A stretch of 64,000 nucleotides of DNA, taken from contig NC_088855.1 of the NCBI RefSeq assembly GCF_963853765.1, positions 17,484,001 through 17,548,000 of the forward strand, read 5' to 3'. Of this stretch, positions 1-63,379 are shown in pieces. Position 1 is the first letter of the stretch. Every line of letters starts with the position of its first letter. The notes under the pieces were generated by a model. It searched no databases. It was not told the DNA's origin and saw only the letters and a program-made list of their open reading frames with translations. This stretch comes from Magallana gigas. Its lineage: Eukaryota. The position numbers and the translations under genes were made by a program.

Positions 1-900
1 GTATTTTTCAAATATTTTACTTTTGTAAAATACTCTAACTAATAATGATTCTGAAAAAGATTATACATCACTGTAAGTATAAACAATCTAGCTTTCAATT
101 CACAACTTTAACATAGACCCTTTATACAGTTCCAAAATAATTTATTTAAAAGATAAAATTACGTGTACCAAATAATAGCGATCAAGCTGCTATAAATAGC
201 TTACAAAATCTCTATCACTCAATGCATCCTGAACCCCAACAGTGTTTAGTTGATGACCCATTATTAACATATCTGTTCCTATGGAGTAATAATTATATTG
301 TAAATAATTATATTGTAAAGTAGACTTCAGTTGATTAAACGTTAAGAGGTGCAGTTAGTTAAATACCACTGAGATAGGTGAAAATAAGATCGTCAAGGAA
401 ATTTTCAGTGATAAGCAACTACACAACAGAAAGAATGCAAACAAACAGATGTTTTCCTTCAGTGATGATTGCCTGAATTTTATATTTATTTAAAATAAGC
501 ACAATACTTCTCAACAGCTGTATTAGCCTACTCGGGTATTCAAGATTTTACTTTAATAATTGTACATGAATATGGTTATATTATGTCATTATTTTTTTCG
601 AATTCAAAAGTGAACGACGATTTCAATTTACTGGCTTGTAGCACATACATGTATCATCATATAACAGAAATTTTTGTATATTTCTTGAAATATCCATCAA
701 CTTTATATTTTACAGTAATTTTTTTTATCATAAATAAATAGTGTTCCTAGTTTAACAGTGTGCAATATTAAATAGGGTATATTTTATTCTCTATTTAACA
801 CTTGGAAAGGTGTATATATAATGCAGGACACTTACACTGAGACATTTGACCTAATGAATCTTAAATATATGTACCGGTAAAATTTCTGATTTAGTTTGTG

Positions 901-1441
901 AACAAGTGAAAAGCTGTCAATGTGACAGCAAACCGGGTTTTCTAATATGTGAACTGCATCCATAATCAATGTCAACCCGTATCCAGTGAAATGGAGTACC
1001 CTATATGCAATATTTTGCTAAAAAATGACTAAGTTCAAAAGCTGGTAATTTTTTCATAAATAATCAGAAATCAAAATCCTAGCAATATGCACACCTCTGA
1101 TACATGTATATGAGCAATTGATCTGCAATAGAACAGTTTCATATCTTGAAAACTGTAGGAGGAGTTATCCATACAATGAGGGTACCCTATATGCAATATT
1201 TTGCCAAAAAATGACTAAGTTCAAAAGCTGGTATTTTTGTCATGAATTATCGGAAATCAAAATCCTAGTAATATGCACACCTCTGATATATGTACAATGG
1301 ATCTGCAAAAGAACAACTTCCTATCTTAAAAACTGTGGGAGGAGTTATCCGTACAATGAGGGTACCCTTTTGGCAGCCGCCCGCCCGCTATTTTCACCAT
1401 TTTAAAAACCGGATTTTTCCGTTGGAAAACCCGGTTAAAAA
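901..1441 (+). mobile_element. Non-autonomous Helentron/Helitron-like element, family A, 2 internal ~180-bp monomers
   Basis: 5' AACAAG..GCTGTCAATGTGACAGC hairpin and AAACCGGGTTTTC sub-terminal repeat inverted to 3' GAAAACCCGGTT; CCGC short repeats; monomers start at 996 and 1182. Confidence 0.8.
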
Positions 1442-4400
1442 TTAGCAAGGAACAGAAACTTAAGGTGTATTTAATATAAGTTTGGAATTTAAAGCACAAT
1501 GAGTTTTGTTTTTGATATGAATAAAATATTCAAATTTCAAAAGACTACCAAGAACTGTACAGTTACTCAACAATACATCCCTTGCATTCATCTTCACAAT
1601 GTTAAGGTTTTCTGAATCGGGAGTTTCGTAATCACAAAGCCTTGACATTTTAAAGATGCAGTTGCATTATGTAAATATCATTCCGACAGAAAATAACCAT
1701 TGCTCGTATCACCTTTAATTATTTATACTACAATTCATTAAAAGTGGGGAAAAGGTGTTCAAAACTTCAAATGCTCGCTCTAGTCCCGGATATTGTTGAT
1801 ACGATGATCAAGATTATAAAGGTTTTATCAAATAGGAAAAGTTGGTGTTGGTACAGATACTGATTACATTTTTTCAATAATTGAGATTTTGCGATTTCGC
1901 GCGATATCTGGAACCTCTTATCGTCGTTGAAAATCGATCGGAGCGACTCAAGCATAATTATCGTCTTGATTAATCTCGTCATATTTGCAATATTTCGTAA
2001 TTAAAGATTAGGAAAAACGTTATCGTAACATTTTTTTAAGCGCGCGCCGCCGTTGAAAATTGGTATCTTGCCTTTCATTACTACCAGCGTCAGTTATTGA
2101 ATCAGATACACGCAGGTACATTTTTTGCTAAATATTTTCACTTGATAAAAGCAAGGAGTACACGTTAAGTTTCGAACTTGAATGACATTTTTAAAAAGAT
2201 AAAGATATATAGCAGTCAAAATATCAATATTCATATTCCATTCTACCACGTACATCAGATATATACACGAGAAAAAAAATATTTTTTTACCACCGATAAA
2301 CACGGGATGGTACTCTTCCGCCCTGTAGTAAAGAGACATCGTAAGTACAATATTTTTTTTTTCAAAAATAACTGCATTTTAATGAGATGATACTCAAAAA
2401 GTAAATTAGTCTCTTCATCATTAACAAAAAGGTAAAACATCCAAGAGACCCAAAGGGACAATTTGCAGGTAATATCGGTTTAAAAGTCGTTTTTCCAAAA
2501 TTAATGGAAGTTCTTTCAAGTACACAGCACGATCGAACCAATTGCAATTGCAGTACGTGATCGATTGGCAGGTCGTTTAGACATGCAAACAGACAAGCAA
2601 ATGAATTTAGATTTAATGTGAGGACTTCAGACATAATTGTAATTCATGCTTGCCAGTTGGCGTGAGTGGGTGTATACCACACGCCCTAGTCACTGCATAC
2701 TCGGAACTGCACTTCTCTATCACTTTCATGTAGGAAGTCTTTGGGGACCCTGCCTTTCCAAAAGGAAGATGAATAGGTAATTGAAGCGCGTGGTTTTTCG
2801 TAAACCTTTTGGTCAAAATTAGCTTGATGAAGTGCAAACTTCTCATATGGGATGCGTTATAATAATTGTGATGAGCGGTTTTTTCAAACAATGCTTCTGG
2901 CCAAATTCATTAATCATATAATCTATACATGTGTTGGTTTTACCATGGGCTTTCTATGCTATACTTGTATTTTATTTGCACGCCATTCATACCTTCTGCC
3001 CTTCTGACATCAAGTCACCTCCTCAATGATTATAATGAAAAGTGGTTCAAGACCTTACACTTTTTCATTATTTACGATATTTCACGCAGAAGCGTATCAC
3101 TTGGAAAGTGATTTTCTATAACACCTAGCTAAAGAATTGTATTAAAATTCATTTATAATACTTGAATAGAATCGATTTTGAGGACATTCTATCATGATTA
3201 CAAGCTGGCATCTGATAATGCTAACATATGCAGTGAACGGAAGGTAATAAAACATACCTGTCTTTGGAAGCCCAAGTGTCATCATTCCAAGCATTAACAT
3301 TTAATACAGCTGATATTATTATTGATCTGAGTATCGTAAATCAAAACATCGCCTACCCAAAGCGACATGCACAAAATATTTATATTAAAACAATCAACAT
3401 TTCGAATTCATTGTTTAAACAGTACCACGAATTTCATTTCAAAAAATAGATTTAATCAACATATATTCTTCGCAATATGTTGTTTTATTCATGCCATTAA
3501 TTAAAATAATTAAATATTATATCATCTCTGAAACATACCATGTTGAACTTCCACCACATTCTATGAGAGGGTTGTCGTCCCTTCGTTTAAACTTCGCCGA
3601 ATCACACAGTTCCCCTGTACAGGCCACTGTTGTGTTTTCCACCGACATAGGTCTGTGCTTCTGAAGAATTAAACTTTCCATGAAAAGAATATTAAGGTTC
3701 AAAACCTCCTACTGTCATAGCGGGTGTAATTTAATTACTGGAATCAGTTTCTTTACTCACACAGTTGCGGGATGCGCGCTTTCTCTCTTTCACTCTCTTA
3801 CTAGCTCTCACTATATAGTGATGCTGTTTGGATGCAGCGCACGCCCGAGTACGCGAAACTGATAGTTAACGACGACAAAACAGATCATAAATTGTGCAAT
3901 ATCCCCGATCAGATCTATCGACGAGAGTATATTAAGCCTTTATCTAAAACTCGATTTCTGTTTGGCTTTTCATAAATCAATCGTTTATCAAGCGTTAAGA
4001 ATTCTATTTCAAGTCTCGGTTTCCCCCTTTTATTTGTATTTGTTGCTCAGGTCGTAAAAATGTCACCCGTCTGGAAATGAAATTATAAAGGGATGCTGTT
4101 ACATATCCTACTTTCAGGGATTTGACATTAATAAAGGTATTTCTCTTATTAATATATGTGAATTTTCATTGATGAAGTGACGTGGGTTTAAAGAAAGATT
4201 TTTGAGAAAACGTTTTGTCTTTGTTTCCATTTTTTTTTTTGGAGGAATTCACATTAAACAGATTTAGTTAAACAATTAACATTTCAGGGAAGTTGAGGAA
4301 TCCCAGAACTTTTTGATGTCTTGAATGTCTTCGATTTTGTATTTGTCAGAGTTTTCCGTAATCGTTTGGGGAGTGATATCAGTTCAGCGCCGTTTCAAGT

Positions 4401-4523
4401 TCGTGGCGCTGTATGCCGAAATAATTCAGTCCGAAAAGATTGGTGTGATGGGATCGAAAACTTAACAAATCAGTGATACTTTTAAAATACTTTTTAACAC
4501 ATTTAAGGGGTACCCCCCTCCCC

Positions 4524-4670: not shown

Positions 4671-6807
4671 TTAATTTGTAGCATTTCTAACATCTGAAAA
4701 TAAGAAGTTAAGATTTTCCTTCAGATTTTCCCCTTTTTATCATGATGTTGTCATTCACTATTAAAAGGCTATTAATTTAGTTGCCTGTTGGTATTTTTTT
4801 TTAATGTTTCAGCATTCTGTATACGTCAGTGTGTCTCGTCTATGAACTGAAACTTCACCGTGAGGTTTGTAATTTAAGTCATATCAGGAACAGCACAAAA
4901 AGATACCGTAGGCGAAGCTTTACGACGCTCTCAGTTTTCGACTCAACTTTTATCAAACAACTACCCATCATACATGTAGCTCTGAAGTACAAACCGGCTG
5001 GCATTTTCCTTTGAATATACCAGTTTATCAATACCATGAGCATAAAGTGCGATGAGATAATCGTTTCGAGTCTGTCTGTGTCGGCTCTAGATACCTGTGA
5101 GGTGTTCCGTGAATATTCGAACGGAAAACCTTTAATGATCATTTAATTACAAACGATGGAAACGTATTCATCTGCCGGAAATCGTGTCCATTTATGTTTA
5201 GAGAACAGTCTATCCGAAGCAGTCGCGATTGGCGACGCAATGAAAATTCTATTATGTCGAAGAACTGTTTTGTATTTATCGATTTACTGAGTAAGTTTCA
5301 TAAAAAGGCCAAAATCAAACTTGGTTTAAAGTCAAATTGAGAGCTTGAAAAAGCTTAAATTGCAGTAGTTATAAGAGTAGTATATACATCAGCAGTTCTT
5401 GAGTGTCATGGGGATAGCACAGAGGGTTGGGGAGAGGATACACGAAACACACCTAATACTAGTATAGGTTTTCTGCACAGGTTGGCAAAATTTACGTACT
5501 GGAACAATAGTGCGTATGACAATGTTGCCTATCCACGGACAAGCGTTATAGCGTCCAAGTGATGCAAATTGTGGACAATTTAGAAGGAAACAGACATCAA
5601 TTATTTGTAGTTTAGGTCCCAGGACGATATCGGTGTATTTTCAGCGAACAACCATATCATCATTCTTTTAAAGTCTAGCCTTGCCAGCACCCATCATCGC
5701 CTCTTTTTTTCACTCTGAATAAAATCCCTTTCAATTACATTCATAATTTATACTTGATTTGAATCTTTTTATCTTTTCTAAAAGAAATTATAAAAGAAGA
5801 ATGTATATACATTGTTATATAATCAGAATTAATTGCTTACAATCTCTGGTTAACACTTAATCTGTTTTATGGCAGATAACATTGACAAATGCATCAGCAG
5901 TAGTGTGGGAGATACGTAATGTTGACATATTTTGTTCATTCGAAATACGTACGTTTTTCTAATTTTTCAATTCTTTCGTCAATATTCTTTATTTAAATGG
6001 ATATCTAGGAAAAGCGCATTTGCTTTGAGGTGCATGCGATTTCTGCCTCTATCATGATGTGAGTAGTACAAGTCATCGGGTCGTTGCCTTGCCCAGCATA
6101 TCTAACAAGAATCGAAAGGCAGATTGTCCTGTACATTCATTCTCTTTTGCTTTTGATTATGAACACTTCAAGAACTATTATTGTGGCATAATTTCAATAA
6201 CAATAAATGGTACTGCAAGTTTTTGCTCGGGTCCAGGACAACATTAACGATATAAATTACAATTTGTCTTATTCTTACGACTGAAATATTGATACAAATG
6301 GTTAATAAATATATTTTCCTCTATTTTCGTAAATTCTGAGACATGTTTAACAAGGGCACCGCAAAGCGGAGCATCCCCTCGCGAAATGAAAATATTGTGC
6401 GGGAAAATTCATGATTTGGGAATAAACATGTAATTGAAGAGACCAAATATTTAATATGCTAAAACCACTTTAAATTAAAATACTTCGTTTATTCCTACAT
6501 GTATCCCCATGCACGCTCTGGGGTGTATCCATTGGGGATGGGTGCATTTACATGTGCGTGGTTGTACAATTCTTCCGTATTACTAGCTAAAACACACCAC
6601 AAACGTGTTAAACTTTAGTAATTTATTTTAAGTTTTAAGAATTCTCTTTATCCAGTGACATGTATTACGCATTTAGACAATAAGTGTCGGCACATTTAAG
6701 TTTCATATTGAAAATAAAACGTAAGTAAGATCTGGCGATTGATAATCTACTCTATGAGACATTAATCATGTTGACGATATTCTTCAAGTCTTTTCTGAAT
6801 TATGAAC

Positions 6808-11327: not shown

Positions 11328-13444
11328 TGGAAACATTAAACTTGCTACACTCGATCTTACATTGTCCTTATTAATATAACCATAAGGACAGGTGTCACTG
11401 TAGTAGTATGGATCCAAGAAATTATCTTCTGGTCAATATTCGATAAACATTAGTTCGTCAATTATCTAACTTGGTTCTTTAGTGTCTCAAGTAAATTGCC
11501 CTTATAGAGATAGCAAGTTCAAAGGCCATCGAGATAGCAAGTTCAAAGGCCAAACGTAAACAATCTAGAGAAAAGGTTTGTTCAATATTTTGTGAACCCT
11601 TTACAATAGAGACAGCACGCGACATGAACAATTATGAACCATTTTACACCCATAAAAATACTACTGTGATTCGTTTTCAATATATGCATGAAAGCCTAAA
11701 CCTCAAATGATTCGTAAACAAATGTCTACTTTTTTCTTTGATTATCCAACAAATATATTTGTAAAGAACAAGATACATTTTCAGTCATATTTTACCCTGT
11801 TTTACAGTGATTTTAAAAAAAATTAATATCACAAACAATTGAAACGGTACGTTTATTTACACAAGAATAGTAATTACCCATAAATTAAGAATCTATAAAT
11901 AGTTACGTGATTAGGCTTTCACATGGTTAATTGTGACTTCATAAACAGTGCATTTTCTCGTAATTTTCATAAAACTGAGCAGAAGACACTAGTTCCTTAG
12001 TGGGTTTCTGAATAGTAAAATATGTCCGCAGCTGTCACCCACGTTGAAACTCACATTATAACTTTATCATGTTATATTACGTAAAATACATTAATATCGT
12101 TGTGGGCGACGGCCGCAGACACATTTTTCTATTTAAAAAACTATGAGAAAATATGCCATTTTTCATCATTTTTTACATAATCTTATCAATATTCCAAAAT
12201 ATTGAAGTCGTAATCATTTTTTGAAACAAGATAAAAGTGCATAATTTGGTACTATATATACACACATGTTCAAAATGGTATGTGTAATTTTATGAGAATT
12301 AAACAACTTTTGAATTTTAGGGCAAATATTGAAAGAAACTATTAATACCCTCTTCTTTATGATTCTTTGATTTTAAATCTCATGATATAACATTAACCAA
12401 CAACCAAAAAACATAATGTTAGAACATAATAATACTGAGATTTATTCCTTATTGCAGAGTAACAGTTAACAACATACAGATCGATAAAAGAATGATAATA
12501 AAACATCTCCTTCTAAACACCATTATATGATATGATAGTAATTGCTTTATAGTGAAAATGTTATACAAAAATGACAATAAACAAATTAACTAATAACATT
12601 CATTTTGTTTGTAGAAAATATCCAGGGTTAATCAAACCTGTTTTACAAAATATGAATGTTTATAAAATGTGCAAAGATAAGCGTTGTTAATGTAAATCAG
12701 TGCAACGGCATAATAACTGGCATTCGTAGACCAGACCTTATTTCTTACCTCCTTTTTTCAACTGCATGTACTTAATTTTCTCCTCAAATCATTAATCTCA
12801 TATTAAATTCAGTAACTACGGTACAATCTGCTATAGATACATTTAGCTAATGAAATAGAGCACATTGTTAACTTTGAGTTGCCTATAGGTTAGACATAGT
12901 TTTACCATAGTTTCACCTACACTACATAACTTGCTGGCATATGTCAACATGAAGAAGTTGTACAGGAAGATAACACCTAGACCTTTAAACAATAAAATGG
13001 CAAAAGATGAACAAACTTAATACGGTGGCTTGCAACATTTTAATTGTGTTCGTAAAGCATTAAAAATATCCCTTACATATTCATGAATAGCGCGCCGGCA
13101 AGCACTGCAAGCTCTAACGACAACGCCTGGGCGAACAGAACATTCGAATTACGGTGAAATCATGTACACATTATACGTAAGTTACATCCCATGTGACACG
13201 GTTCTTATAAATATTCGTCCTCAATTGTCTCACAAACAAATGAAATTTGTGTACTCAGATGTCACAATCACTTTTAAAGAAGGTAAAGAACTATGAATTG
13301 TATAGGTAACTAATGATTTATTTTACCAAAGTTCTTATTAATCAATCAAAACATCGTGGTATAAAGCCAATACATGTATAGCTGGAGTGTAATGAATAAT
13401 TATATTTAGAAAACACTTAAAAACGTTTTTTCATTAGTTTTTTT

Positions 13445-47000: not shown

Positions 47001-50000
47001 CAGCCGTTCATATCTTTGCGCTTTAGATACGACCAAATAATTTTCTTTTGTTACCATAGAAACATTTGGAATACATTTAAGATTTTTTCAGGTCACGTAA
47101 AAATAATTGTTTATTTTTGTAATTTTTAAAAAAGGGTTTAAAGGTCTTATCTAACACTTACGACCTTTCATTTCTACAACGTCGATATGGGCATATACAT
47201 GTAGTGTTAATGCATTAATGTTTAAGAGTCTTCCTCTTTACTTCTGCTGATACTAAATAGAAACCGACTGTATATTAGAAAAGAACATAAAACCTTCTAC
47301 CGGGTCCCCCCGACAACATACATGTAGAAATACGGGGACATGAAGAGGGGAAAGACAACTTTCCTGCCGTACTTCATTTTGTATGCACAGAAAGACCCAA
47401 CATGGGACTGCACATTTAGAGTCAGCAGACATTAAGGTGAATTTATACAAAATTAACTTTTAAATTTCTGCGCAGACCAAATCAGAAAAAGGGTAGTTGA
47501 TCGCTTTAATGCTGCCAGGTTTTACGGTTTATTGTAGACGAAGCAACAGACTGTTCCACAAAGGAACAGTCTGCACTGTGTGTGATTTTTTATAAAGGTT
47601 CATAAAATATTTGGGAAGAGTTTCATGGATTTCAGGAAGCTGAAAGTACTACGGCGGAGCATCTTGCTATAAAGTTTATATCATCATTAGAGGAATACGG
47701 CATAGTCATTGATCGTATGCGTGAACAGGGAAATGATGGGGCAGCTAGTATGGCTGGCAAGCATAGAGGTGTCCAGGCAAAACTTAGAGAGATAGTACCT
47801 CAAGCTACCTGTACTCATTGACGTGCATTCACTGAATTGTCAGTTCATGCTGGCAAAGAACCACTTAATCTCTTTTGCATCGATTACTCGGCTAAACGTC
47901 TAAAGCAGTTTAACGAATCATTATCGAATGATAATCCAACTAAGGAGCAAATGGAACGCAAAACGAAACTCCAATCTTCATGCGAGACCAAGTGGTTCTC
48001 TAGGGTCGATGCGGTAACGACATTTAAGAAATTTTATTATGTTATTATCGATGCTCTAGAGGATTGTCTGAGGATGGAGACGCTTAAGCAAGAACTTATA
48101 TATGTTCAATAAAACAGTTTGACTTTCTCATACCTCTTGTTACATCTGAACACGTTCTTGCTCCCCCTTAATCCCATCTACAGGAGAAAAACGTAAGATT
48201 TGTTTGAGGCCGCAAAGGAGAGCAAAACCGTGATTTCTATGCAGAGTGCAGAGGGTGTTGATGACGATGTGTGGGATAGTATATTTGAAGAAGCTGTAGC
48301 TATAGAAGTCCAAAATGATGTTCATTCGTTACCGGTACAAAGATTTCTAGACGACGATGCCATCCAGGAAACGTTACTGGAGATACTCCATCAGAATAAT
48401 GGAAGAGAAATCTATAAAATACCAACTGTAGATCATCGTGTTAACGAATTGAACGATCGTTTAGTTCAAAACAAAAACAGATTCTCTGCACAATACATAC
48501 TTTCTTCTCAAATAGGAAACATCACTAGGGCAAAAAATGACAGAACTTTATGACACATTCGGAGAGGACTTACCTGCTAATGACAGCAATGAGTTTCAAC
48601 GAGAGGCGAAAACCAGAAACTCTTGGCGAGACTTTGCTTTCAATTAAGGAACCTTTGTTTTATCCAAACGTCTTCAAATGTTTGGAAATGCTTGCACGTA
48701 TGTCGGTAACTACAGTAACCGCAGAGCGCTTTTTCAGCGTCATGCGTCGCTTGAAGACATACCTCAGGTCAACAACGACGAGACAAAGAATGTCGTTTTT
48801 AGCAAGTTTACACATATACTAGTACATGGATACGGAAGTCAGTATATCAATTGTTATATCAGAATTTGCCGAGAAAAAGCAAAGACGACTTGCCTTTCTT
48901 TTTCAATAAATAAAAAATAAAAATTTGCTCTTCTGATATTTTTATGCCCCTCTTCGAAGAAGAGAGGGCATATTGCTTTGCTGCTGTCTGTCGGTATGTC
49001 GGTCGGTCGGTTCACCAACAGCTTCCGTTCATTTTCTTTGCAAAGGATACACATATTGGAATGACATTTGGTATACAGGATTATCATAATAATATCTAGG
49101 TCAAATTTGATTTTGGGTGGAATCCAGCAATATTCGACAGAGTTGTGCCCCTTTAACATAGAAAAATTCCAATTATTTGCAGTTTCCGTTCATTTTCTTC
49201 GCATAGGATGCTTATATTGAAATGAAATTTGATATACAGGTTCATCATAATAATAAAAAGTTTAATTTTTGGTACGTTCAAGCAATTTTGACAGAGTTAT
49301 GTGCCTTGGACTTAGAAATTATTCAATTATTTTTTTTCCCGTTCATTTTCTTCGCAGTTCTTTCCAAGGGAGGGGGAAGGGGCATAAGTGTATAACAAAC
49401 ATCTCTTGTCTATTTTTATTTGCTCATATTACCATAACCTGGGTGACAGGTTGACAATTATTATGAATAGAATATCGAGAAATAACGAAAGGTTTAAACA
49501 ATATTTTTGTAGACAAAAACGTTAGAGACCAGTAGGAGAGAAAGCACAAGATTTATTAGATGAAAATTAAATTAATAATCAATCAGGCACTTCTTTTTCT
49601 TTTTCATCTTTAATTTTATGATGATAATTTAGTAAGCATTTTACACATTAAAAAACTGAGGGTATTTTAATGAAACTCTTTTTTCTGGATACTCAAAATT
49701 ATAGTATCTGAAATGCTGAAAACTCGACAACTTCCGAGGGCCTCGCCCCCACCAGGGCTTCGCCCTGGACTTATTGGGGCCTCAAGGTTGGCCCCAACCC
49801 CCTACTTTTTCTGCTTCCACAATAAACAAACCTTAGCTACGCCCCTGAATAGACATCAGTATGAATATAAATATATGCACTGAATGCTAATATTTGGATG
49901 TTGTCGGTCCCATAACACACCAAGCGGTGCAGGCAAATTATCATAGTGCGCTTTTGCGCGGTATTCAATTTGTCTAGAGTTATTCAATTTGTCTGCACCG

Positions 50001-53000
50001 CTTGGTGTGTTATAGGACTTACGACATCCAAAAATAAGCATTCAATGCCTAAATATTCAAATTAAGTGAGAGAATATGGCAGTTTTTTTTTCATTTAAAT
50101 GCTCTGGGAAATGTTCGGTCCGTTCCCTTGGGATCGGGAGACGCTAGAAAAAATGTATAATATTTGCCATCTTTAGTCTACTGTATTTATAAAATCATCG
50201 AAATGCTGTTTTAACAGTGAACAATTTTTTTAGTAAATTATTATCTATCGTTAGATATCGTTTTAATATCAATATCAAAATTATAGAATTCATAGTCTTT
50301 TTTGCAAGACTTCAGGTAGGAGAGGGGGCGTTCATTACCATTTTTAAAAAATGCTTTTAACTCCAGAATGAAGATTAAAATATTGCATTTGTGAGATTCC
50401 ATGACACATAAATGGCCTATGGTACTCGAGCTCAGGGTGTGGGCGGCTCTTGTTTCAAGTTACGACAGTCCCGGGATTCGTTGTATTCTGAGCACATTTA
50501 AGCATTTGCATCCACACTGACATGCCATAGCCAAAGGGATTTATGGAACAGAGTGAATAAGATTAAAACATATCGTTGATAGAATTCTCAGCACGTTACC
50601 CATTTTAACTGTTATCCTTTAAACATTTCCGACAGGTTATTATCTTGATTGCTTTTGCTGAATCCAGCGCGTTCATTTGTCGCTGTGTTTATTAACTTAT
50701 TAACTTCATGGCATGAACGAGATAAATAAAGGTTTTGCCCTGATCGTTAAAAGTTAATTTTTGTTATTGAAATTTGGGATTACGATCATATACCTTTTTT
50801 CAAAGAACTTCCTCCTCAATACACAATTTGTATAATCAATTCTCACTCAATTCCTCTTTCAGCTGCTACAATGAACAGCGGTTTTCGATGGAGAAACAAT
50901 TGATTCAATGATTATTCACATTGTTGTTATTATCGAGAAGAGGATTAAAATACATGTATCTTAACAAAGAGAAAATATTTGAATTATTAATTTACGTACT
51001 AATAACTAACTTTGACGACCTTCTAAGGATTTTAAAATCCTTTTTATATTTCCAACAAATAACGGTCAACGTCAATTCACAGCTATTAACAATAATATTT
51101 TTAAGGATTTTGTGAATTTTAGAAGAATGATACCTATATAAGAAAGCGTAAACTCTTGCATATTTAACTAGATTTCTGTTTTTGAGTTAAAATGTTATCA
51201 TGCACTAGGTTCTACAACTTGTTTGGCCCCTTCGAGAGATGTTCAGAAAATACATCCTTTTTTACAACACCATATGTTCAAAGTTGTATAAGATACATGA
51301 GCCGCCTTTTATTAAACACTTTGAAGTAAGTTGCGCAGCGCCGGCGAGGAAAGCGACCTCTAAGAATCAGTGCGCGGGAAAAAGAACGAGCTAACCCCAC
51401 AGATTCATCAAAGAACTCTTTAAAAAAAGATATTTAAAAATCTTATGAGTTCCTTTAGCGGATATGGTATAGGCTCTGAGCACACTAATACAATTTGAGC
51501 ATGACGATGATTCTAAACAAAACAAATATAAATCAATAGCGGTAGATTTTTTTTTAAATTGTTTACCTTTATTAATTGAAGACATCGCTTTTGGTACATG
51601 AAATGACCCTTAAAGCGGTGCATTTCCATGCCCTATACAATATAGTGAGATATATAAAATCTTACTAAATATTGAGAAATCGTTACTTGTTTGTCAGATA
51701 ATTTTGATTGGCTTAAGGCACTTGAGTTGATGTTTTGAGATAAAATAAAATTATGGTCATTGCATAAAGTGATTGAATATCCAAACTCCTAATTTTTTAT
51801 TACTCAGCAAGAAAAAAATCACACAGGTCCAATCACGAAAATACAAATACGATTAAATGAGCAAGCAGGGAAAGGGCGTTAAACTGCATTATACAGGATA
51901 ATAACGACGAAATAATTGACTAGTATATTTCCATACATCTATAGCTAAATATTTTTTTTCACTGTGTTCTGTTTAAATATGAAAATGAAGCAAATACATT
52001 GAATAAAGAATATTCTTGAAACGCTTTTACTTCTCTAGAAACGAATCCATTTTAATTCAAAGTTAGATTTCAATGAAGCTGTATAAATTATGGTGTCCGC
52101 CACAGCAGACTTTTCATCCAATATGTACAGGTTCAATCTTTCCAAAGACTTAAGTGTTATTATCAGCAACCGCAGCAGCCATTTCCATTGATTGGCTAAA
52201 CTTTGCACCTGAGATGAATCATTCACTACCGAGACAATGGTGACAATTGACTTTTTGTGTTTACGAGAATTAATAGCTTATTATATACGAACCCCGGATT
52301 CCTCTTCAAAGATTTAAAATTTTCTCGTTTCAATCAAGTACACTACTCAATGCACAATCTTTCTCTGTAATATCATCAGATATTTACCTTATCATTTTAT
52401 AAGAAAAAAAAAGGTAAACTTGATGAAAGATTACTCTAAAGAGAAAAAAACTATATACAACTGTCGTTGAACTTGGAAAAACAGCGAGGGCCAAAGCGTT
52501 TAGCATTCGTTGTACGGTGTGTTGTGTCTCTTTTTTTTTAATATTAAATTCACATGGCAGAGTGGCCACCATGATATCAGACTTGAGCCTTCTCGGATTT
52601 TCTTTTGCAAAAATTTATTCAAGAGATTTAACGAATCTCAATATAAAATGGAAAAAAAAACGTACACAATGTTGAACATGTGATGAGAGAAACTTTTTTA
52701 TATAATTCCGGATTATGGTCAACAAGTACAGAACAAAATCTCACATCAGTATTTTTCCCGGTAAAGTAGACAAGATTGCATGATAGACTGATAATTGACT
52801 TACATTTCTTTTTGACAAATACTATTATACATATCATTTTACACAAAACGCACATCTAATACATTTATAAAGGCAAATATGATAAAAAGAAAAAAAGGCC
52901 AGTTTTTTAAAACCCTGCTAAAAAATACATAAATTCTGTGTTTTAAAGGACAGACAAAATAAATGAAACTTCAAGTTTATAAAACAAAATATTTGACAGA

Positions 53001-53414
53001 TATTTGTCACATATGAAATTTAATAAACCCCTCATAATTCATACTCCAGATTCGACGCCAAGAGACAAAAATTAAAATTCCCATCTCTGCTATATACATG
53101 TATAAGATGTTAATTATCTATAACACAACAGAACACACGTTATATTTGTTTGAGGACTCTCTTGCCGTTCTAGAAGGGAAAATTCAACATTTGAACTAAT
53201 AATGCAAACTACTTACTTTATCTTTGTAGATGTACTTTCGAATGGCACTGAATCCTACAGCTAACATTGAGGCAAATACACCGAACCCTAGAATCAGCCA
53301 AAAGGCCTCGGTCATCCTGAGTGATCCATGGACTCCAACTGTTGCTTCATCTGACGGCGATCCACGCCCATTCAGTAAAAATCCACATTCAGTGTTATTA
53401 AAAACAGCAAACAT
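13758..53414 (-). CDS. DUR3: Urea-proton symporter DUR3-like (sodium:solute symporter family), 13 coding exons, 791 aa; span of spliced CDS
   Basis: Thirteen GT-AG exons joined by hand with matching phases; total 2376 nt = 791 codons + stop. Family motifs: SQWTWAATLLQS, YGISGPFWYAAGA, APGAKTFLQ, GGLGATFY, FGTIFVDQSYWQS, AVTSTGSAE, SLGWVYLFMG, DIDNPLNPW. Confidence 0.95.
14246..14745 (+). mobile_element. Family B Helentron-like element with ~160-bp internal tandem units (DUR3 intron 12)
   Basis: Starts AAACAAGAGATGTTTGT; units start at 14285, 14446 and 14606 (last partial); (GACC/GACA)n microsatellite; terminal GCCCTCCC..GGGGGGC hairpin followed by A-run. Confidence 0.8.
14860..15085 (+). repeat. 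Single satellite-like monomer (resembles the oyster ~166-bp Cg170/HindIII type, from memory); related fragment at about 42560-42727 plus 47189-47250
   Basis: Shared GCCCTCTTT..CCCTACGGC.GGGCCAAT..(G)CCA.ATAG..AATG core at both places. Confidence 0.45.
15815..16004 (-). CDS. DUR3: DUR3 exon 12 (DLNLRAAH...ASFKRW)
   Basis: TTTCAAG acceptor, GTAAGT donor, 190 nt, phase 2-0. Confidence 0.9.
16229..16639. mobile_element. Tc1/mariner-like MITE, 411 bp, with GGGTTTAC/GTAAACCC subterminal arrays (DUR3 intron 11)
   Basis: TA|CAGTACCGATCAGA(C/T)CCAACCTAACA inverted ends, TA duplication. Confidence 0.85.
16716..16887 (-). CDS. DUR3: DUR3 exon 11 (KENAMLAGN...DIDNPLNPWTERYA)
   Basis: GATATAG acceptor, GTAAGA donor, 172 nt, phase 1-2. 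Confidence 0.92.
17962..18172 (-). CDS. DUR3: DUR3 exon 10 (LSLGWVYLFMG...FFENT)
   Basis: CCCAATAG acceptor, weak GTGATC donor, 211 nt, phase 0-1. Confidence 0.92.
18632..18794 (-). CDS. DUR3: DUR3 exon 9 (EREICKKAIKPKYRCVTHG...LNLLG)
   Basis: TTTTTTCAG acceptor, GTGGGT donor, 163 nt, phase 2-0. Confidence 0.9.
19738..20225. mobile_element. Family K2 element with right end deleted (first duplication copy)
   Basis: TTAA|AGGGATTTGGACACGATTTGAG at the same flanking site as 23148; no right TIR seen; end coordinate approximate. Confidence 0.65.
21247..22314. mobile_element. Non-autonomous mariner-like element, 1068 bp
   Basis: TA|CGAGGGTCAATC(C/A)AAAAATACGAAGAC inverted ends, TA on both sides; empty site visible in the duplicate at about 25130-25140. 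Confidence 0.85.
23148..23689. mobile_element. Family K2 element in DUR3 intron 8 (second duplication copy)
   Basis: GGACTTGGACGCGATTTGAG ... CTCAAATCGTGTCCAAGTTCCCCT inverted ends; homologous to 63380-63885. Confidence 0.75.
25592..25722 (-). CDS. DUR3: DUR3 exon 8 (PYRLVTDANSCILCGRSRGR...CNACTEDD), Cys-rich loop
   Basis: TTTTTCAG acceptor, GTAAGT donor, 131 nt, phase 0-2; too short for the ORF track. Confidence 0.9.
25840..25997 (-). CDS. DUR3: DUR3 exon 7 (LVPVVVAQKLLG...YQLYLK)
   Basis: TTTGTAG acceptor, GTTATT donor, 158 nt, phase 1-0, AVTSTGSAE motif. Coding frame differs from the listed 25832-26074 ORF. Confidence 0.93.
27708..27914 (-). CDS. DUR3: DUR3 exon 6 (NFGTIFVDQSYWQS...DVDA)
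   Basis: CTGTTTCAG acceptor, GTAAAG donor, 207 nt, phase 1-1. Confidence 0.95.
28061..28183 (-). CDS. DUR3: DUR3 exon 5 (TVDKVY...GVINIV)
   Basis: TATTTCAG acceptor, GTACGA donor, 123 nt, phase 1-1. Confidence 0.93.
28366..28575 (-). CDS. DUR3: DUR3 exon 4 (GAAVMKSL...SSTRTL)
   Basis: CTAG acceptor, GTAATG donor, 210 nt, phase 1-1, GGLGATFY motif. Confidence 0.93.
31222..31432 (-). CDS. DUR3: DUR3 exon 3 (YGISGPFWY...TAMLML)
   Basis: TTTTTTCAG acceptor, GTGCGA donor, 211 nt, phase 0-1. Confidence 0.95.
32594..32851. mobile_element. Short Kolobok-like MITE; partial sister copy at about 30790-30950
   Basis: GGGTCCTCCACACCCT left end versus AGGGTGTGTCGAGGACC|TTAA right end; internal similarity to 30790-30950. 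Confidence 0.5.
33110..33232 (-). CDS. DUR3: DUR3 exon 2 (NSLDVSFDAGG...ATVGSK)
   Basis: TTTATTTCAG acceptor, GTACGT donor, 123 nt, phase 0-0, SQWTWAATLLQS motif. Confidence 0.95.
34040..34956 (-). mobile_element. Family A Helentron-like element, 4 monomers, inverted, in DUR3 intron 1
   Basis: Reverse complement of the same termini and 180-bp monomer. Confidence 0.85.
39025..39245 (+). repeat. Two-copy tandem repeat, period about 109 bp
   Basis: GGTATCC..ATTTGAGACAAAGTTACAACTCAAATGG at 39025 and 39134. Confidence 0.8.
39337..39984. mobile_element. Tc1/mariner-like MITE, 648 bp
   Basis: TA|CAGGGTGTCCCAGAATATCT ... AGATATTCTGGGACACCCTG|TA. Confidence 0.85.
41795..42482. mobile_element. TIR element (Kolobok-like) carrying tRNA-type Pol III boxes
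   Basis: TTAA|GAATATAGGTGGATAAG left; CTTATCCCC..CCTATATTC right (flank TTTT, degenerate). Confidence 0.55.
42205..42278 (+). promoter_or_regulatory. tRNA-like A box (TAGCTCAGTGG) and B box (GGTTCGATACC); not a foldable tRNA
   Basis: Both match the Pol III internal promoter consensus; no anticodon arm or acceptor stem, with T-runs between the boxes. Confidence 0.6.
43413..46264 (-). pseudogene. Sola-type DDD transposase pseudogene (frameshifts, stop, nested insertion)
   Basis: Motifs FPTVQSHYCRK, FDLQKVL..P..YYNRKL, WHETEAKRGSCEI, SDSCTGQQRN and GHSQMEGDSVHATIE spread across several frames. Family assignment from recalled motifs; the 5' end may extend to about 46540. Confidence 0.82.
44970..45465. 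mobile_element. Family K1 Kolobok-like element inserted in the Sola transposase
   Basis: Perfect TTAA duplications at 44966-69 and 45466-69; removing the element and one TTAA rejoins the transposase sequence (RRNLNRKDCRRRFQC). Confidence 0.88.
47490..48905 (+). pseudogene. hAT transposase remnant (ZMYM1/DUF4371-like, with C-terminal dimerisation domain)
   Basis: IVDEATDCSTKEQ, DGAASMAG...GVQA, THCRA, CETKWFSR, TAERFFSVMRRLKTYLRST; many frameshifts and stops. Confidence 0.85.
48939..49410 (-). mobile_element. Family B Helentron-like element, inverted, inserted behind the hAT transposase remnant
   Basis: Reverse complement of the 14246 element including ACAAGAGATGTTTGT end, microsatellite and hairpin. 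Confidence 0.8.
49730..49847 (+). mobile_element. 3' terminus of the hAT element
   Basis: GC-rich subterminal stretch ending TTAGCTACGCCCCTG (reverse CAGGGGCGTAGCTAA, hAT-type TIR); matching 5' end not found. Confidence 0.6.
49876..50049. mobile_element. Foldback MITE, TA-flanked
   Basis: Inverted arms of about 65 bp with core ATAACACACCAAGCGGTGCAG. Confidence 0.75.
53217..53414 (-). CDS. DUR3: DUR3 exon 1 (MFAVFNN...IYKDK, 66 aa)
   Basis: ATG at 53414 in A-rich context, first hydrophobic helix, phase-0 donor GTAAGT at 53216-53211 matching exon 2. An upstream start or UTR exon cannot be excluded. Confidence 0.85.
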
Positions 53415-54826: not shown

Positions 54827-55017
54827 GTTTTTGAGATTCGGGGCCCTACCGAAAATACACTACTCATTATAAGTGGTAGGAATTTACCAATAGTACATGT
54901 AGGTGGTCCTAAAAATGTCAGCAACCAGGGTAGGAGCTTTTGATGTTCCGAGCAAGTTGTTTAAAATAGCCCTATAATGAATAGTGTATTTTCGGTAGGA
55001 TCCAGAATCTCAAAAAC
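54827..55017. mobile_element. TA-flanked MITE upstream of DUR3
   Basis: ~45-bp imperfect TIR GTTTTTGAGATTC..CCTACCGAAAATACACTA.TCATTATA. Confidence 0.75.
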
Positions 55018-56153
55018 TATTCATTTGATGATTTCACCGTCATTTTTCCTAATGATAGTGGTTTACCTCTATAAGATGGCCCTAAAAATTTCATTTGTAA
55101 AATATGAATGATTAATTTTAATTACCGAACTGCGTTCTAGAATGCAATCACTTTTAAACTGAGAATTGCGAACTGCGTTCCTAAAACCGATTGCTTTACA
55201 CGCAACACATAATTATTTAAACGGTAGAAGAGTCGTGCCACATCACGAAACACTAGGCGCATATACCAATCTGGGATATAGAATTTGATGTCTTTTTAAA
55301 TAATTACGATCTTTTAGATACTAAATTTACTTTGAAATCCGGTTTTTCTTCTAAAGAATCGAAAATTCAAATTATAAGATCATTATAAGAAAACAAGGGA
55401 AAACAAGGGAAAAGATTCGATTTCGTCTAAGATAGTGAAAAAGAAATTAGAGAATATAAAATTTGGTGTTTGGTTTGTAAATAATTACTTCAAGGATCTG
55501 AAAAGTTTCATGGATCTAACGGCGTAATATTATTGTCATTTGATGATATTTTCTCTTTATTTTCGCAATTGTTTAAAAAGAAACCAGCGACCTTAGATCA
55601 TGTATGTAATTAAACGTCAAAGCGATATTCAATGGTACACATGTAGGTGTTTCCATAAATAATAAATAGGACTTAGTCTTAAACCATTTTAACAAGACGT
55701 AAGACTTTAGTAAGGATGTAACTACGTCTTTTTATTGCATCAAAACAAGTTTAAATGACGCTGGTTTCAAGTGAAATATGCATAGATTGCGTAGTCCTAG
55801 CTCAAATGCCAAAACAATTGTGTTGATTTCAAAGAGCCATGGCCGAGTGGCCAGCAATGGCCTGTCACTTTGCTGTCTGACACAACGACTCAAGTCCAAG
55901 CTCTACATTGATTATGGATATCGGTACTATTTTTGATAAAACACAAACTTTAGGTTGTTCTAAAACTAAAAGTAGTATCACTGGTCACATTACAATCATT
56001 ACTGGCGTTGTATTATAGGAAATACCACATGTTAGGTGTTTGTTCTCAGATTATTTTCTCTGAGTCAGTAAAACTGTCTGTCAAATGAAAATTTATATAC
56101 ATGTTGTCAAACCGAGTGCAACAAAATAATACAACGTAGTGCTAGTCAATCTG

Positions 56154-56481: not shown

Positions 56482-59400
56482 CTGAAATTATAACATGGTA
56501 CTTAGTTTATAACACCTAATAAGGTTACACTGACAAGTATAATAGTAGAGTTATAAAGTGGTGTGCATTTAATTACAGCTAACGATCCCCTGGTCCCCTC
56601 TTTTCTGAAAACCAAGATTTTGTTGAAGTTAAATAAAGTTATCAAAATTAAAATACATAACATAACTAAATTAACATTTTATTGTCATATTAAAAGATCT
56701 TTAAAAAATTGAAATAATTTTATTATTCTGCCCAGGTTGACCATAAAATATAAAAAGAAAAGAGGCGGCTTTAGTTGTAATCTTTAATCAATTTTGGTAG
56801 AAAATATCCTAATGAAAAACTCAAAACACCAAACACACACAACCAAGTACATTAAAATTACCAAAAATGGAAAATTAGATAAAAGAATACTGACTGCACA
56901 GACGGCCGTACCAGCACCATATTCTTATCAGCTTGCCATCACCACACCTCGCTCGGCCACACCCCAGCTGGGCCATCTTTGGTGCGATCACCTTGATTTT
57001 ATTGAGAAAAGGCAAAACATGTATACAACTGGCTTATCCTTTATTACACTGGTACCTATACATGTTTATCTTCATATCTTGTGATTTTTACATTTTTTAA
57101 TATCATTAAATAGCATATATACACTTTCAAACAGTAAATATTTTTTTTATTGAAAGAACAAGTGGAATAAAATATTCAACAACTACTTAGAAGATGGGAA
57201 TAATGAAACTAAATAATTCCTGTAAAAGTAAAATATTACTAATATTTTTTTCTTTATTGGGATTGGATTGGTGGTTAGTCATAGTTAATAACACTACCAC
57301 TGGGCAGTAGAAAAGATCTGAAAAGATTAAATGCATAGTCACTTAATGACAAATAGGGTCCCAATCCCAAACCAGACTACTCGCAAAGCGACCAGGGACT
57401 TTAATGTGTTGGCAGATGTGTCCTTCCTCATACTAACCGTGTAGTTAATTTTTTCCTGATTGATACCTAGTTGTATACATGCGTGAATCTTCAGGGGAAG
57501 GAGAGTCGGGAAGTTCAAGAACCCTCCCCCTTTAGTGATTCAAATAAATAAATTTTCATAGTAAATTTACACCCAAAAATGCCTTTGAACCTCCTCAAGC
57601 AAACTGAGATATCTCTCGGACACTCTCCTTTCTGGATCAGTGCACGTCATAGTATGTAGATTTTTAAAGACTTAAATATATTTAGCTTTATATCACCAAT
57701 AATAAGAGTGGCGCCATAACACTGGAATGTAACAAATTTGGTAGTGGTTTATCTTAACCATGTACAATGTAAAGAGTTTGTTTGCTGCTTAGGTGGAAAG
57801 AAAATTTCAAATAACATATTAATATTGATTTAATTTTTACCAAAAATTGAATGAATGTTAAATAAATAATGGAGATAAGACACATCAATTTCACTGTTGA
57901 TGCGCTCTTTTTCATACAGAAGCCACAAATCATTGACGATTTCATAACCTTGTAAGAAGAAGATGATATGTTCAAAATTATACAAAACGACTCAAGACGA
58001 ATGATAGAAAAAAAGAATCGAATCCGAGTCGTCAGTGACATAGAAGCAAATGAATTCCATCCCCCACCTGGGTGAATAAAAAGTCATTCATGTGTATATT
58101 ATACGAGAAAATAATTTACCAGCTTGTAATGGCCGCATTTTTTCCAGGGCTCGTTACACTTGCGAAGTGTGTAATTCCAGTAACGTTTTTCGTTCTCAAA
58201 GGCTCGAGTTGCATCATCTCCAGACACTGCCAACGAAAAGTTCACTTGTTTGTATGTCGCAGACAGTATTATTTTCACAATTTGCGCATGTATATATATA
58301 TTATACAATTGTACTTACAGGCTGTACCAAGAGTAGTAATTGTATCAAGGATAAACGACGGGAAAAGAAGAGTGCATAAATGCTACAAAAAGTCATGCAA
58401 TGTTTATCAGCTTGGTTAGACTACATTCACCATCAATTTTTTAATTTTAAGATTTAAAATTATTTAACCAATATATGTACATGTACCACATGCAGAGCCT
58501 AACCTGTAGGATTTTAATTTTGTGCTTATATTCATTTTGATGTTTATTTGATGCTTCATCGCATTAAAGTTATTATATACATGTGCGTTCTTTGTCATGG
58601 AAATAAATAATAGACGGAACAGCCATAAAACATGTTATTTAGTTCGCTTCCGCGGCTTGAATTACCGATTTTTATTATACGTACTTATCAATTTGGTTAT
58701 ACAAGTTTGAAAGTCTCATTAAATCTTAAAATCTCACAATAAATCTATTCAAAACGCGTGATGACGTTTACTGTGTTCATTCGCCGTGATCAGGTTTAGT
58801 GTGTTATTGAAAATCGAACGTTAAAGACTTCAGTGTAAACATAAGGTGAAATATGTGCTGAGTGTTAATATTTACTTTATGTTACTACTTATTGCATATT
58901 GTGCATCAATGTATTGTATAAGAAAACTTATGATTGATAAGTACAACAACGAGACAACAAACCTGTTCCGTATCCACTCCAGCCGTTCTCTCCTATCCAG
59001 CCACAGGAGTCAGTCAGCCGGATCCTTTCTTTGTAATCGGAGTGATTTCTGTAGCATTTACGCGCGTAAGTCAAGGCATGATCCGCCAGAGTCGAGTTCC
59101 ATGTCTGTTGAATAAAAATATAAAGAGGTGTAAACGAGACTTTTTGGTATGTGTGTCCTTTGCTTTCCTGTAGAACATGTATTCAAAATCAAATAATATG
59201 GCTTCGAAATTAATTGGATGCTCTATTCAAATATTAACTTCCTTTAGGTATTCAAAGAGATATCAAACATAAATATAACATTCCTACTTAAGTACTTTGA
59301 TGGTTTATAAGAGCTAGGAAGGCAAAGATCAATCAAACATTAGTATCTGCTAACAAGGGACGTTTTTATCATGCAAAGCTTGCCACCTTTATTCCTAAAT

Positions 59401-59742: not shown

Positions 59743-60034
59743 CTATAGTAAAGTTTTAGTTGTTCATCACATCAGTAAACACCATTTTATAAAATAGGTT
59801 TATGAAGACAAACAAAAAATTTGGAAATCATTAATATACATGTAATATATATGACAACAAAAGTTGCTGTTGCTTTTAAGTAGTATCTTCACTCAGGCAC
59901 TTGCAATTACTATTTGCATTACCAATAATTTGGGATTTTACTAAATAGTTTACGAAGTTAAATATTTCTTATTTTCATTTCAATGCAATCACACAGACGA
60001 TAAAAGTATACAACGGAGATAAAGTAATGATATA

Positions 60035-61083
60035 CGAGGGTTGTTCGGAAATTATTGAGACAACTCCAATATTTTCTTTTTTAAACGACGAATTTTGGTG
60101 AAAATTGGCATAGACACTGAAGAAACGCCAACAAATAATAAAACAAAGTAATATTAAAAGAATATTTAATATTTTGTTTACGACGGTAGGTAAACAAGTC
60201 GGTGGTCGGGGTACCCGGTGCAGCCATGAACATGGAGATTTAACAACTTAAACATCTACTTTATAAGTGTCCGTAGAATTACAGTTTATGATTAAAGAAA
60301 TAAAATTAAATATTTTCATTTTGCTATTCTTTGCGACTAACTTTTGATTAAGTTTTACTGATGTTCAAGTTGAAATACGGATATGGTACACGTATATTTA
60401 CCAAACAATAGAAATCTGACAACGACTTTACATTGAATTTTGACGTCAAGGCGGCGCATTGAAAACCGTCCATCTGGTGGAAATCTCAGAGAGAGGCATT
60501 TTAAGGCCACGCAAATGATAAAAAACTATACGAAGACAAGATATAGAGCATCAGCTCATCATATTTTTTTTCATTAATTGCTTAACTAGAATTAGACCAA
60601 AGGGATTAATTATCAAGTACTTTTGACACACTAACTGTTGTCAACAGTTCTGAAATATATAAAAAATGACTGCAGTAGACATTCACAGTAATTAGGCTTT
60701 CGGGTAAAAATAACTTGATCCCCCCCCCCCCAAAAAAAAAAAAAACAAGAATGAGAGAAGTTGTAATTGATAACATCTTGAAATGAAAACAAAAGATGAG
60801 AAATAAAGAATAATTCTTATTTCCGTTCGTTTGTAAAGTGTTTAAAACACATGAGCAATAAGAAGCGTTAAAATGACGTTGCGAAAAGTTTGCAGTTGCG
60901 CCGGGTCACTGGACGAAGGCACGTTGGTCAGCTTACCAGGTATGATCTATTCAGGCCATGGACAAGAAACTTTTCACATTGGTTATCTCTATCCTGATTT
61001 ACGTTTTGGTGAAATTTAAAGAGTTAATCTTTTTTACTAAAAGAATACAAGAAAATGTCTCAATAATTTCCGAACAACCCTCG
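60035..61083. mobile_element. Non-autonomous mariner-like element, 1049 bp, upstream of CAP exon 2
   Basis: Perfect TIR of about 28 bp CGAGGGTTGTTCGGAAATTATTGAGACA; TA left, TT right. Confidence 0.8.
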
Positions 61084-62115: not shown

Positions 62116-62338
62116 CCAAATGTGGAAACCTCATTGTTCGTTGGAGACCAATGTTCTTGAATTTCACGGGTAACCCTTGTCCACCCACGAATTTACATCC
62201 CCTCGAGCGTATTTACTATTTGTTTAATATTTATTAAAATTATCTCGAACTTTCTACCAACGAAATTACGTCCTCATGAATTTGGAAAAATTAGCTACCC
62301 ACGAACATTGACCATCACGAATAAAAATGATCCCAAAG
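62116..62338. mobile_element. Degenerate mariner-like MITE
   Basis: Imperfect inverted ends (..TTGTTCGTTGGAGACCAATGTTC / GAACATTGACCATCACGAATAAAAATGAT..|TA). Confidence 0.4.
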
Positions 62339-63379
62339 TACAGTGTTTTATTTCATGAAGTGTATTTTTGATGTACATGTGCATATGTTTTTTGTCCAAT
62401 ACTAAATTAAACTTTGTTCTCTGTTTGACTTATTTTATAAATTGTATTTTTGACACATCCTTTTTTAATGTTCGGAAGCTTTTAGGGTAAACAAAAATGT
62501 ATTGCGGCCAGTTTTGAAATTTATTTCGCTCGAAACAAAAACTGTTTATGTGTTTTCTCATATTTAACTATAACATATTTAAATTCCTCTTTACCCTTAC
62601 TCTTTGAGGGTGACAGCTCGAGCGATATCTATCCAGCAGATAAACCATGATTGTCGATATGTTCCATTAGCTTTAAGAAATGTATTTTAAACCGCTGATA
62701 TTATACTTGGAACAGTCAAATCATAATTAATATTTGTAAAGATATCCTTTAAAAGACTCTCGCATGTCTATAGATATCCCCATTTTTTCAAAATAAAAGG
62801 ATAAAAATACAATGTTTTCTCATTCCATTTTGAAACAAACCACGTACATGTATAACGAGTCACATTAGACATCTAAGTCTTTTAAAGGCATGATGTTACA
62901 TTAATCTGATATAAATAAAAATTGTAGTTGCAAATAATTTAAAGATACTTACATTTTTTAAAACTCAAAATGTACCTTTTCCCGTACTTTTTAAAATTGA
63001 AAGTAGGCGAGATTGACAGACTTTGATATTTATACATTTATGATATATATTCCCCGCTGATTACTTAATTCCGAAGACGGTTGGATATAATTTTTTCATG
63101 TACATCTTCCAAATTGGAACACGAAATCTCGGGGTTTGACACAATGTTTACAAACAGAGACATGCATTTAAAGTTGATGGGATATTTTATCTTCATTGTT
63201 ACTTGGGCGAAACGCTTAAACAAGAAGTAATGTGGAGTTTAATTACTGATTTAACTACATGGTGTGTGAGAAAATTCGTCCTGAATTTAACAATGTTGAA
63301 AAACGCAAATTCACTGACAGATTATTGAAATTGCCTTTTACAGGTATATACACGAAAACACAGAACCTTACTAAGTTAA

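Follow-up and report, generated by a model that had tools for sequence, protein, structure and literature searches.

A TA-CA-TG-TA palindrome over-represented in the Magallana gigas genome as the probable excision scar of Tc1/mariner-type elements

Introduction

Excision of Tc1/mariner elements produces 2- or 3-nt 3′ overhangs, and the footprint consists of the overhang sequence between duplicated TA dinucleotides (PMC3878927, PMC7827188). The footprint size given for the superfamily is 2–4 bp (PMC7913693). A preprint that cites the original work on Tc3 names the +4 forms TACATA and TATGTA as the most frequent footprints of that element (bioRxiv 10.1101/659086). In rice, about 94 Mariner/Stowaway excisions were detected by two-species alignment, and their footprints were heterogeneous (PMC4423477). 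Here, we analyzed a 64,000-nt stretch of the oyster Magallana gigas (contig NC_088855.1, positions 17,484,001 to 17,548,000; G000:C3:17484001-17548000), hereafter the window, together with the assembly to which it belongs (564 Mb, 29 contigs). The subject is the palindromic octamer TACATGTA, which can be written as TA+CA+TG+TA. We suggest, with a probability of about 0.84, that most copies of this word were left at donor sites as scars by cut-and-paste elements of the Tc1/mariner type.

The oyster word is similar to the footprints of Tc1 and Tc3 from C. elegans in that the TA is duplicated, the terminal CA/TG are retained and 2–4 element bases lie between the TAs (PMC3878927; PMC7913693). In that system, however, a laboratory reversion spectrum was obtained, whereas the oyster offers a genome-wide fossil record. 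Moreover, on the account of the above preprint, the commonest Tc3 footprints are one-ended, while the oyster is dominated by the two-ended TACATGTA (bioRxiv 10.1101/659086). Sleeping Beauty and Frog Prince belong to the same superfamily, target TA and have CAG...CTG ends like the oyster elements, but their footprint TAC(A/T)GTA, derived from 3-nt overhangs, is not enriched in the oyster. As in rice, excisions of DNA transposons can be viewed genome-wide as a source of small indels (PMC4423477); unlike rice, the oyster has one uniform scar, abundant enough to top the octamers of a single genome. Full-text literature searches found neither TACATGTA nor excision scars described for oysters or any other bivalve.

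Results

Abundance of the palindrome

A word search found exactly 25 copies of TACATGTA in the window, and their start coordinates coincided with those of the at least 25 copies counted by hand in the initial annotation of this DNA. The flanks differ among all 25 copies. Dinucleotide-preserving shuffles gave an expectation of 1.6 copies (none of 100 shuffles exceeded five), and Markov models of orders 1, 2, 3 and 4 gave 1.8, 2.6, 2.8 and 4.6, respectively. The excess is therefore 5- to 15-fold, depending on the model, and the earlier estimate of about 10-fold over 2–3 expected copies was a fair one.

Twenty evenly spaced 10-kb pieces from another chromosome (L031–L050, 200 kb in total) were taken as an independent sample, which contained 70 copies against 7–19 expected. 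In the pooled 264 kb of window and sample, TACATGTA occurred 95 times against 14.7 expected (z = 21) and was the top over-represented octamer outside low-complexity sequence. The palindrome TATGCATA, of the same composition, showed no excess as a control (12 against 10.4). Thus, the octamer test with Markov backgrounds and a palindrome control, proposed in the initial annotation, was run, and the excess survived at order 4 while the control stayed flat. In the flank matrix of the pooled sequence, T-ACATGT-A reached 95, and no other pair of flanks exceeded 30; no comparable spike was seen with the control core TGTACA. In addition, TACATGTA was commoner than each of its 24 one-step neighbours, the highest of which, TATATGTA, had 40 copies, so that an influx of point mutations cannot generate the excess. 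In the whole assembly, 225,258 copies of TACATGTA were counted versus 75,442 of the reversed word ATGTACAT. The sample expectations scaled to the genome amount to 19,000–51,000, which leaves an excess of about 175,000–205,000.

The 40-nt contexts were distinct at 91 of the 95 sampled sites, the remainder being copies of one 2.07-kb tandem repeat, and the outward flanks were unrelated, with no one-sided similarity. An exception was T at outward position +3 (51% versus 36% at generic TA, P = 1e-4), which gives weak support to the scar reading and was also seen with TATATGTA. An AT-palindromic target preference is known for a Tc1/mariner element (PMC7913693).

The counts per 10 kb were over-dispersed (mean 3.5, variance 6.8). 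A hot spot at L031:5074-9340 (G000:C1:2505074-2509340) holds 12 copies within 4.3 kb, all in different contexts and including the stacked form TACATGTACAGTACATGTA; it would be a product of repeated local insertion and excision. The longest site-free stretch of the window, 16110-27394 (11.3 kb), has a probability of about 0.012 at a uniform rate. In L047 (G000:C1:55300001-55310000), a 2.07-kb unit is repeated in tandem at least five times, and the 248 bp around each TACATGTA are 100% identical.

Insertion spectrum in the 180-bp satellite monomer

A 180-bp satellite monomer was used as a natural replicate. Four genome-wide searches were performed with conserved 12-nt anchors tiling the monomer, with a gap range admitting only monomers longer by 4 to 12 bp. 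The first tile gave 2,148 normal monomers versus 99 with an insertion. Exactly +6 bp were found at 30 loci genome-wide. Twelve of them had a clean CATGTA at a consensus TA, at six TA positions (GA|TA|TATG, GATA|TA|TGTAC, CCC|TA|TATGC, CCTA|TA|TGC, TG|TA|GGAGG and GG|TA|TTTTT), for example at C2:50151302, C5:41086415, C4:21534048, C2:22931680 and, on a TACCCTA background, C5:19787259. Two more carried a CATGTA that was ambiguous with a tandem duplication of ATGTAC, four had CCGGTA at a TA (three positions), and twelve were heterogeneous, mostly duplications. The indel spectrum obtained by local all-versus-all BLAST was dominated by one element family and hence uninformative. Taking the paralogs together, a duplicated TA with extra bases between was found at the six monomer positions and at the edge of a carrier element described below.

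Other TA-bounded insertions included the +5 forms TA-CCC-TA and TA-TCA-TA, the +7 forms TA-CAATG-TA, TA-CACTG-TA and TA-CCAGG-TA, and the +4 form TA-GC-TA. Insertions away from TA were duplications, homopolymer slippage and TA-repeat slippage. The TA-CCC-TA subfamily forms a long array (C5:37078554-37094599) and occurs at about 25 dispersed loci, and the other +5 subfamily, TA-TCA-TA, at about 22 dispersed loci. Both resemble one-sided 3-nt scars left by mariner-type elements, with later amplification of scar and carrier together.

The same spectrum bears on a mutational origin unrelated to transposons, such as CpG decay of TACGCGTA, slippage or tandem duplication, or hairpin (P-nucleotide) or templated insertion at breaks. 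The form GTA[CATGTA]C in the monomer is indeed indistinguishable from a tandem duplication of ATGTAC, and point transitions make the word at one predisposed monomer position. On the other hand, the inserted CATG is constant whatever the flanks and is not their inverted copy, and some clean insertions (GG-TA-TTTTTT, TG-TA-GGAGG) occur where there is no similar local sequence. We regard such an origin as very unlikely. CpG decay was rejected on the counts of the siblings TATGTGTA, TATGCATA and TACACATA (14, 12 and 11 versus 95), and microsatellite growth on the presence of TACATGTACATGTA at one of 95 sites.

It could also be supposed that TACATGTA is a selected palindromic binding site of a dimeric DNA-binding protein, since the word is perfectly palindromic, occurs in great numbers and exceeds its neighbours. 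The word, however, arises by +6 insertion inside satellite monomers and mobile elements, which makes a selected binding site unlikely and does not fit a motif. Furthermore, it is present at about 0.4 copies per kb across chromosomes, its flanks are uninformative, and the same TAs also bear the analogous word TACCGGTA and one-sided scars. Of the explanations considered, this is the most improbable.

Empty, occupied and scarred states of one TA

Three states were found for the monomer TA in GATA|TA|TGTAC. The empty state is that of the 2,148 monomers, and the scarred state is found at C2:50151302 and others. The occupied state is represented by an element end ...GACGGTACTG-TA-TGTACAATTG at C4:57484842, which resembles the right end of a miniature inverted-repeat transposable element (MITE) in the window (...GATCGGTACTG-TA), and by a left junction GATA-TA-CAGCTTACTCC at C3:26666674. 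These states belong to paralogous monomers, not to alleles of one locus, and the scar is derived relative to the monomer consensus.

Sites 34848, 1101 and 47196 and the carrier element

Three window sites had been put forward in the initial annotation as insertions, two of them as internally controlled. At 34848, GCATA-TACATGTA-GGGTAC stands against GCATA-TA-GGGTAC in sister monomers. The 181 bp around this site are found with 98–99% identity at at least 40 genomic places, and the motif was present in all 29 other fetched copies of this edge, one of them as AACATGTA; thus, no event took place at the 34848 locus itself. Genome-wide, 354 edges with exact anchors fell into two states, TA and TACATGTA, apart from a few one-off decay variants and one TATA, and the TACATGTA state accounted for roughly 60% among the edges listed of the 354. 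In the window, the sister copies at ~8150-8378 and 901-1108 share this diverged edge but carry a plain TA in it. Judging from these sequence comparisons, 34848 is one old clean +6 insertion at TA that marks a subfamily of the carrier element. The 6-bp insertion claimed for this site is therefore real, but it is a single old scar inherited within a mobile-element subfamily and not a local one.

The carrier is present in three copies in the window (901-1444, 8150-9190 and 34039-34963), each with 2–5 monomers of the 180-bp satellite; the edge scar is present in one copy and absent from two. A GGGC-type microsatellite adjoins one flank of all three arrays. The carrier of 34848 is dispersed on all chromosomes, with at least 40 junction copies. 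Helentron-associated elements with satellite-like arrays were described in Crassostrea gigas as Cg_HINE (PMC7492417). Like these, with their central array of 140–180-bp monomers, flanking short microsatellite and dispersed copies, the carrier has an array of ~180-bp monomers, a microsatellite of a 4-nt motif on one flank and dispersed copies, so that its layout matches the published one and it may be termed Cg_HINE-like. The published description is silent on footprints (PMC7492417), whereas the two carrier subfamilies found here differ by a scar.

Site 1101 does contain TACATGTA in a 186-bp monomer, as had been claimed, but the +6 at TA is ambiguous because an alignment with T>C and another 6-bp indel fits the site just as well. 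The equivalent TA has a clean +6 in the monomer C5:21804507 and a probable +6 in a TA-expanded subfamily (C2:53765693). The clean insertion at the same TA in another monomer favours the scar reading of 1101, which stays unproven.

The third site, 47196, offered as a weaker case, did not hold. The C of TA|CATGTA is the first base of about 35 paralogs of this repeat (~80% identity), and inverted ends were looked for in the repeat unit and none were found. Hence, the word here arose where a repeat begins, and a scar is not demonstrable. A single abundant repeat terminus was rejected as a general cause on the unrelated outward flanks; it does apply at 47196, though.

These sites illustrate a further explanation, namely that the excess consists mainly of copies that repeat families carry internally or form at their termini (satellites, Helentron-type elements, units starting with CATGTA after a TA) and reflects few independent events. 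The 34848 scar was inherited by roughly 200 element copies, the 47196 word was formed at a repeat start, and tandem arrays also carry TACATGTA, with periods of 31 bp and ~77–100 bp near the start of C1 and with the 2.07-kb repeat in L047. For TACCGGTA, pairs spaced by 136/155 bp recur (e.g., C1:822218/822373 and 1164636/1164772), so that a small repeat family containing this word, or bounded by it, accounts for some of the 23,286 copies. Against this explanation, 91 of 95 sampled sites lie in distinct contexts without one-sided flank similarity, and 23 of the 25 window sites are outside locally detectable repeats. Two sites tested by a genome-wide exact-anchor paralog search (54894 and 47196) were unique, the window itself being the sole match. 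In addition, the inherited copies themselves go back to a +6 insertion at TA. We therefore consider a repeat-family origin of the excess to be unlikely, and prefer excision scars.

Candidate source elements and transposases

The two TA-flanked CAG...CTG elements reported earlier at 16229 and 39337 are real. The family-1 MITE (16229-16639) is 411 bp long, with 29-nt inverted ends and TA on both sides. Its exact TA+14-nt termini were found 974 times genome-wide, many of them as +/− pairs 320–450 bp apart. The family-2 element (39337-39984, 648 bp) is likewise flanked by TA on both sides, and its exact termini were found 42 times. These window elements with TA duplications end CAGT...ACTG and CAGG...CCTG, and the extra bases of the scar are thus the terminal bases of resident TA-targeting elements. 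Family-1 pairs also occur in three copies at ~54–56 kb spacing (G000:C1:11880279-11990235), and the satellite arrays at C1:11917184 and 11971668 have the same monomer pattern; this region looks like a recent tandem segmental triplication.

The Tc1-type domain DDE_3 (PF13358) gave at least 150 genomic matches over the curated cut-off, including many uninterrupted frames of 340–380 amino acids, several with an identical score. Predicted Tc1-type transposases are thus resident in the genome.

Other inverted-repeat elements were also observed in the window. Those at 21248-22313 and 60035-61083 share inverted ends of the form CGAGGG...CCCTCG. TA adjoins the first at either end; in the second, the 29-nt ends are perfect, and the neighbouring dinucleotides are TA (left) and TT (right). 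The 2+2 scar of such elements would be TACGCGTA, which is rare (one in 264 kb). An element at 44966-45469 has the form TTAA-AGGGACATGG...CCATGCCCCT-TTAA. Elements of the piggyBac type typically duplicate TTAA at the target and leave no scar on excision.

Re-use of scars as insertion sites

The palindrome at 39985 begins with the TA that forms the right target-site duplication of the family-2 element, so that this element sits in a pre-existing TACATGTA. Genome-wide, CATG+TA precedes 35 of the 974 family-1 termini versus 9.0 expected (P = 2e-11), and a few of these are segmental duplicates. The stacked TACATGTACAGTACATGTA of the L031 hot spot was also counted in support of re-use.

Sites of the window

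All sites and the elements with flanking TAs are listed in Table 1. For the 23 unique window sites, a scar origin is suggested by the statistics and by analogy with the monomer. Removal of the scar from site 37250 would leave the 10-bp palindrome ACGTTAACGT as the target. A gapped pattern across 37250/37328 had no match in metagenome contigs, and nine ATG-started open reading frames spanning TACATGTA sites had no match in the protein collection. The scars had been described as frame-preserving, which holds as the arithmetic of 6 bp; no site was shown inside an exon.

Table 1. Palindrome sites and TA-flanked elements in the window (positions within the 64,000-nt stretch).
Position	Feature	Context
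646..653	TACATGTA	unique context; origin suggested statistically
1101..1108	TACATGTA	diverged 186-bp satellite monomer; probable but ambiguous +6 at first TA of GATATATGTAC
4971..4978	TACATGTA	unique context
6496..6503	TACATGTA	unique context
13371..13378	TACATGTA	unique context
15322..15329	TACATGTA	unique context
16102..16109	TACATGTA	120 bp upstream of family-1 MITE
16227..16641	family-1 MITE with flanking TAs	TA + CAGTACCGATCAGA...GATCGGTACTG + TA; left end also written CAGTACCGATC
27395..27402	TACATGTA	unique context
29201..29208	TACATGTA	unique context
30773..30780	TACATGTA	15 bp past inverted-repeat element 30310-30758
31090..31097	TACATGTA	unique context
33812..33819	TACATGTA	unique context
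34848..34855	TACATGTA	edge monomer of satellite-carrying dispersed element; probable old +6 scar inherited by subfamily
37250..37257	TACATGTA	centre of perfect 16-bp palindrome ACGTTACATGTAACGT (37246-37261)
37328..37335	TACATGTA	unique context
39335..39986	family-2 element with flanking TAs	TA + CAGGGTGTCCCAGAA...GGGACACCCTG + TA; left end also written CAGGGTGTCCC
39985..39992	TACATGTA	first TA is right target-site duplication of family-2 element
43036..43043	TACATGTA	unique context
47196..47203	TACATGTA	start of ~104-bp dispersed repeat (47198-47301); not demonstrable as scar
47319..47326	TACATGTA	abuts start of another dispersed repeat (from 47325)
50951..50958	TACATGTA	unique context
53095..53102	TACATGTA	unique context
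54894..54901	TACATGTA	within small TA-flanked inverted-repeat element (54825-55019); unique at exact anchors
58478..58485	TACATGTA	unique context
59837..59844	TACATGTA	unique context
62845..62852	TACATGTA	unique context

Discussion

The idea of the initial annotation that TACATGTA is a TA+CA+TG+TA scar littering the genome is supported by the monomer spectrum, the three states of one TA, the element termini and the transposases. Based on these results, we suggest the following pathway for scar formation. The first step would be insertion of an element at a TA, which is thereby duplicated. On excision, cleavage of the non-transferred strand by the transposase would fall 2 nt inward from each end, leaving each flank as TA with a 2-nt 3′ overhang (CA on the left and TG on the right, in top-strand terms). 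Since CA and TG overhangs cannot pair, fill-in and blunt joining would give TA-CA-TG-TA, that is TACATGTA, with a net gain of 6 bp (CATGTA) at the original TA. Putative CC...GG-ended elements would give TACCGGTA by the same route, and one-sided 3-nt scars (TA-CCC-TA, TA-TCA-TA) and +7 forms (TA-CAATG-TA) may also arise. Each scar would make two TAs, at which elements could re-insert, and scars inside mobile elements or satellites would be copied along with the carrier.

Several observations weigh against this reading. The +4 forms TACATA/TATGTA are barely enriched (358 versus 328), and the Sleeping Beauty-type words TACAGTA (29 versus 29) and TACTGTA (34 versus 31) are not enriched despite the resident CAG...CTG ends. 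The two counted element families are far rarer than the scars. Direct evidence of insertion comes from one repeat family, and 12 of its monomers carry GATACATGTAC, at a position that lies one T>C change away from the word. Paralog comparisons in the sample gave two cases of insertion type, three of substitution type and two unclear ones. Finally, repeat boundaries and inherited copies (47196, 34848 and the tandem arrays) mean that the count overstates the number of independent events.

The lack of enrichment of the 3-nt product TAC(A/T)GTA argues for a 2-nt stagger. The +4 forms are the commonest for Tc3, on the preprint's account, and are barely enriched here, so that the oyster outcome appears to be of a known type in an unusual proportion. 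Accordingly, TA-CA-TG-TA, cited in the initial annotation as a described footprint, is one known outcome but, as far as that source goes, not the textbook Tc3 form (bioRxiv 10.1101/659086). The mechanism itself is already known; what is new is the instance, and its scale is unusual.

Tentatively, and with somewhat less than even chances in our estimation, we propose a broader picture. The oyster germline may hold on the order of 10^5 near-uniform scars, which would outnumber their source elements, form a leading class of 6-bp indels in this highly polymorphic genome and serve as preferred landing sites in a self-reinforcing cycle of insertion and excision. If this is true, the lifetime ratio of excision to insertion and the outcome of germline end joining in an animal could be read from a single assembly.

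The usual census of cut-and-paste transposons covers the copies still present, and a second genome is needed to see excisions. Because the scar is uniform, excisions become countable in one assembly. Scar counts inform on the turnover of TA-targeting elements and on the repair of germline double-strand breaks, where fill-in and blunt joining would keep both overhangs. The scars in satellites and Helentron-type elements are subfamily markers. In practice, TACATGTA and, to a lesser extent, TACCGGTA and TACTAGTA would top lists of promoter or k-mer motifs of the oyster and are not to be read as binding sites. Furthermore, the origin of small indels in this species, which is known for extreme polymorphism, can be approached through the scars.

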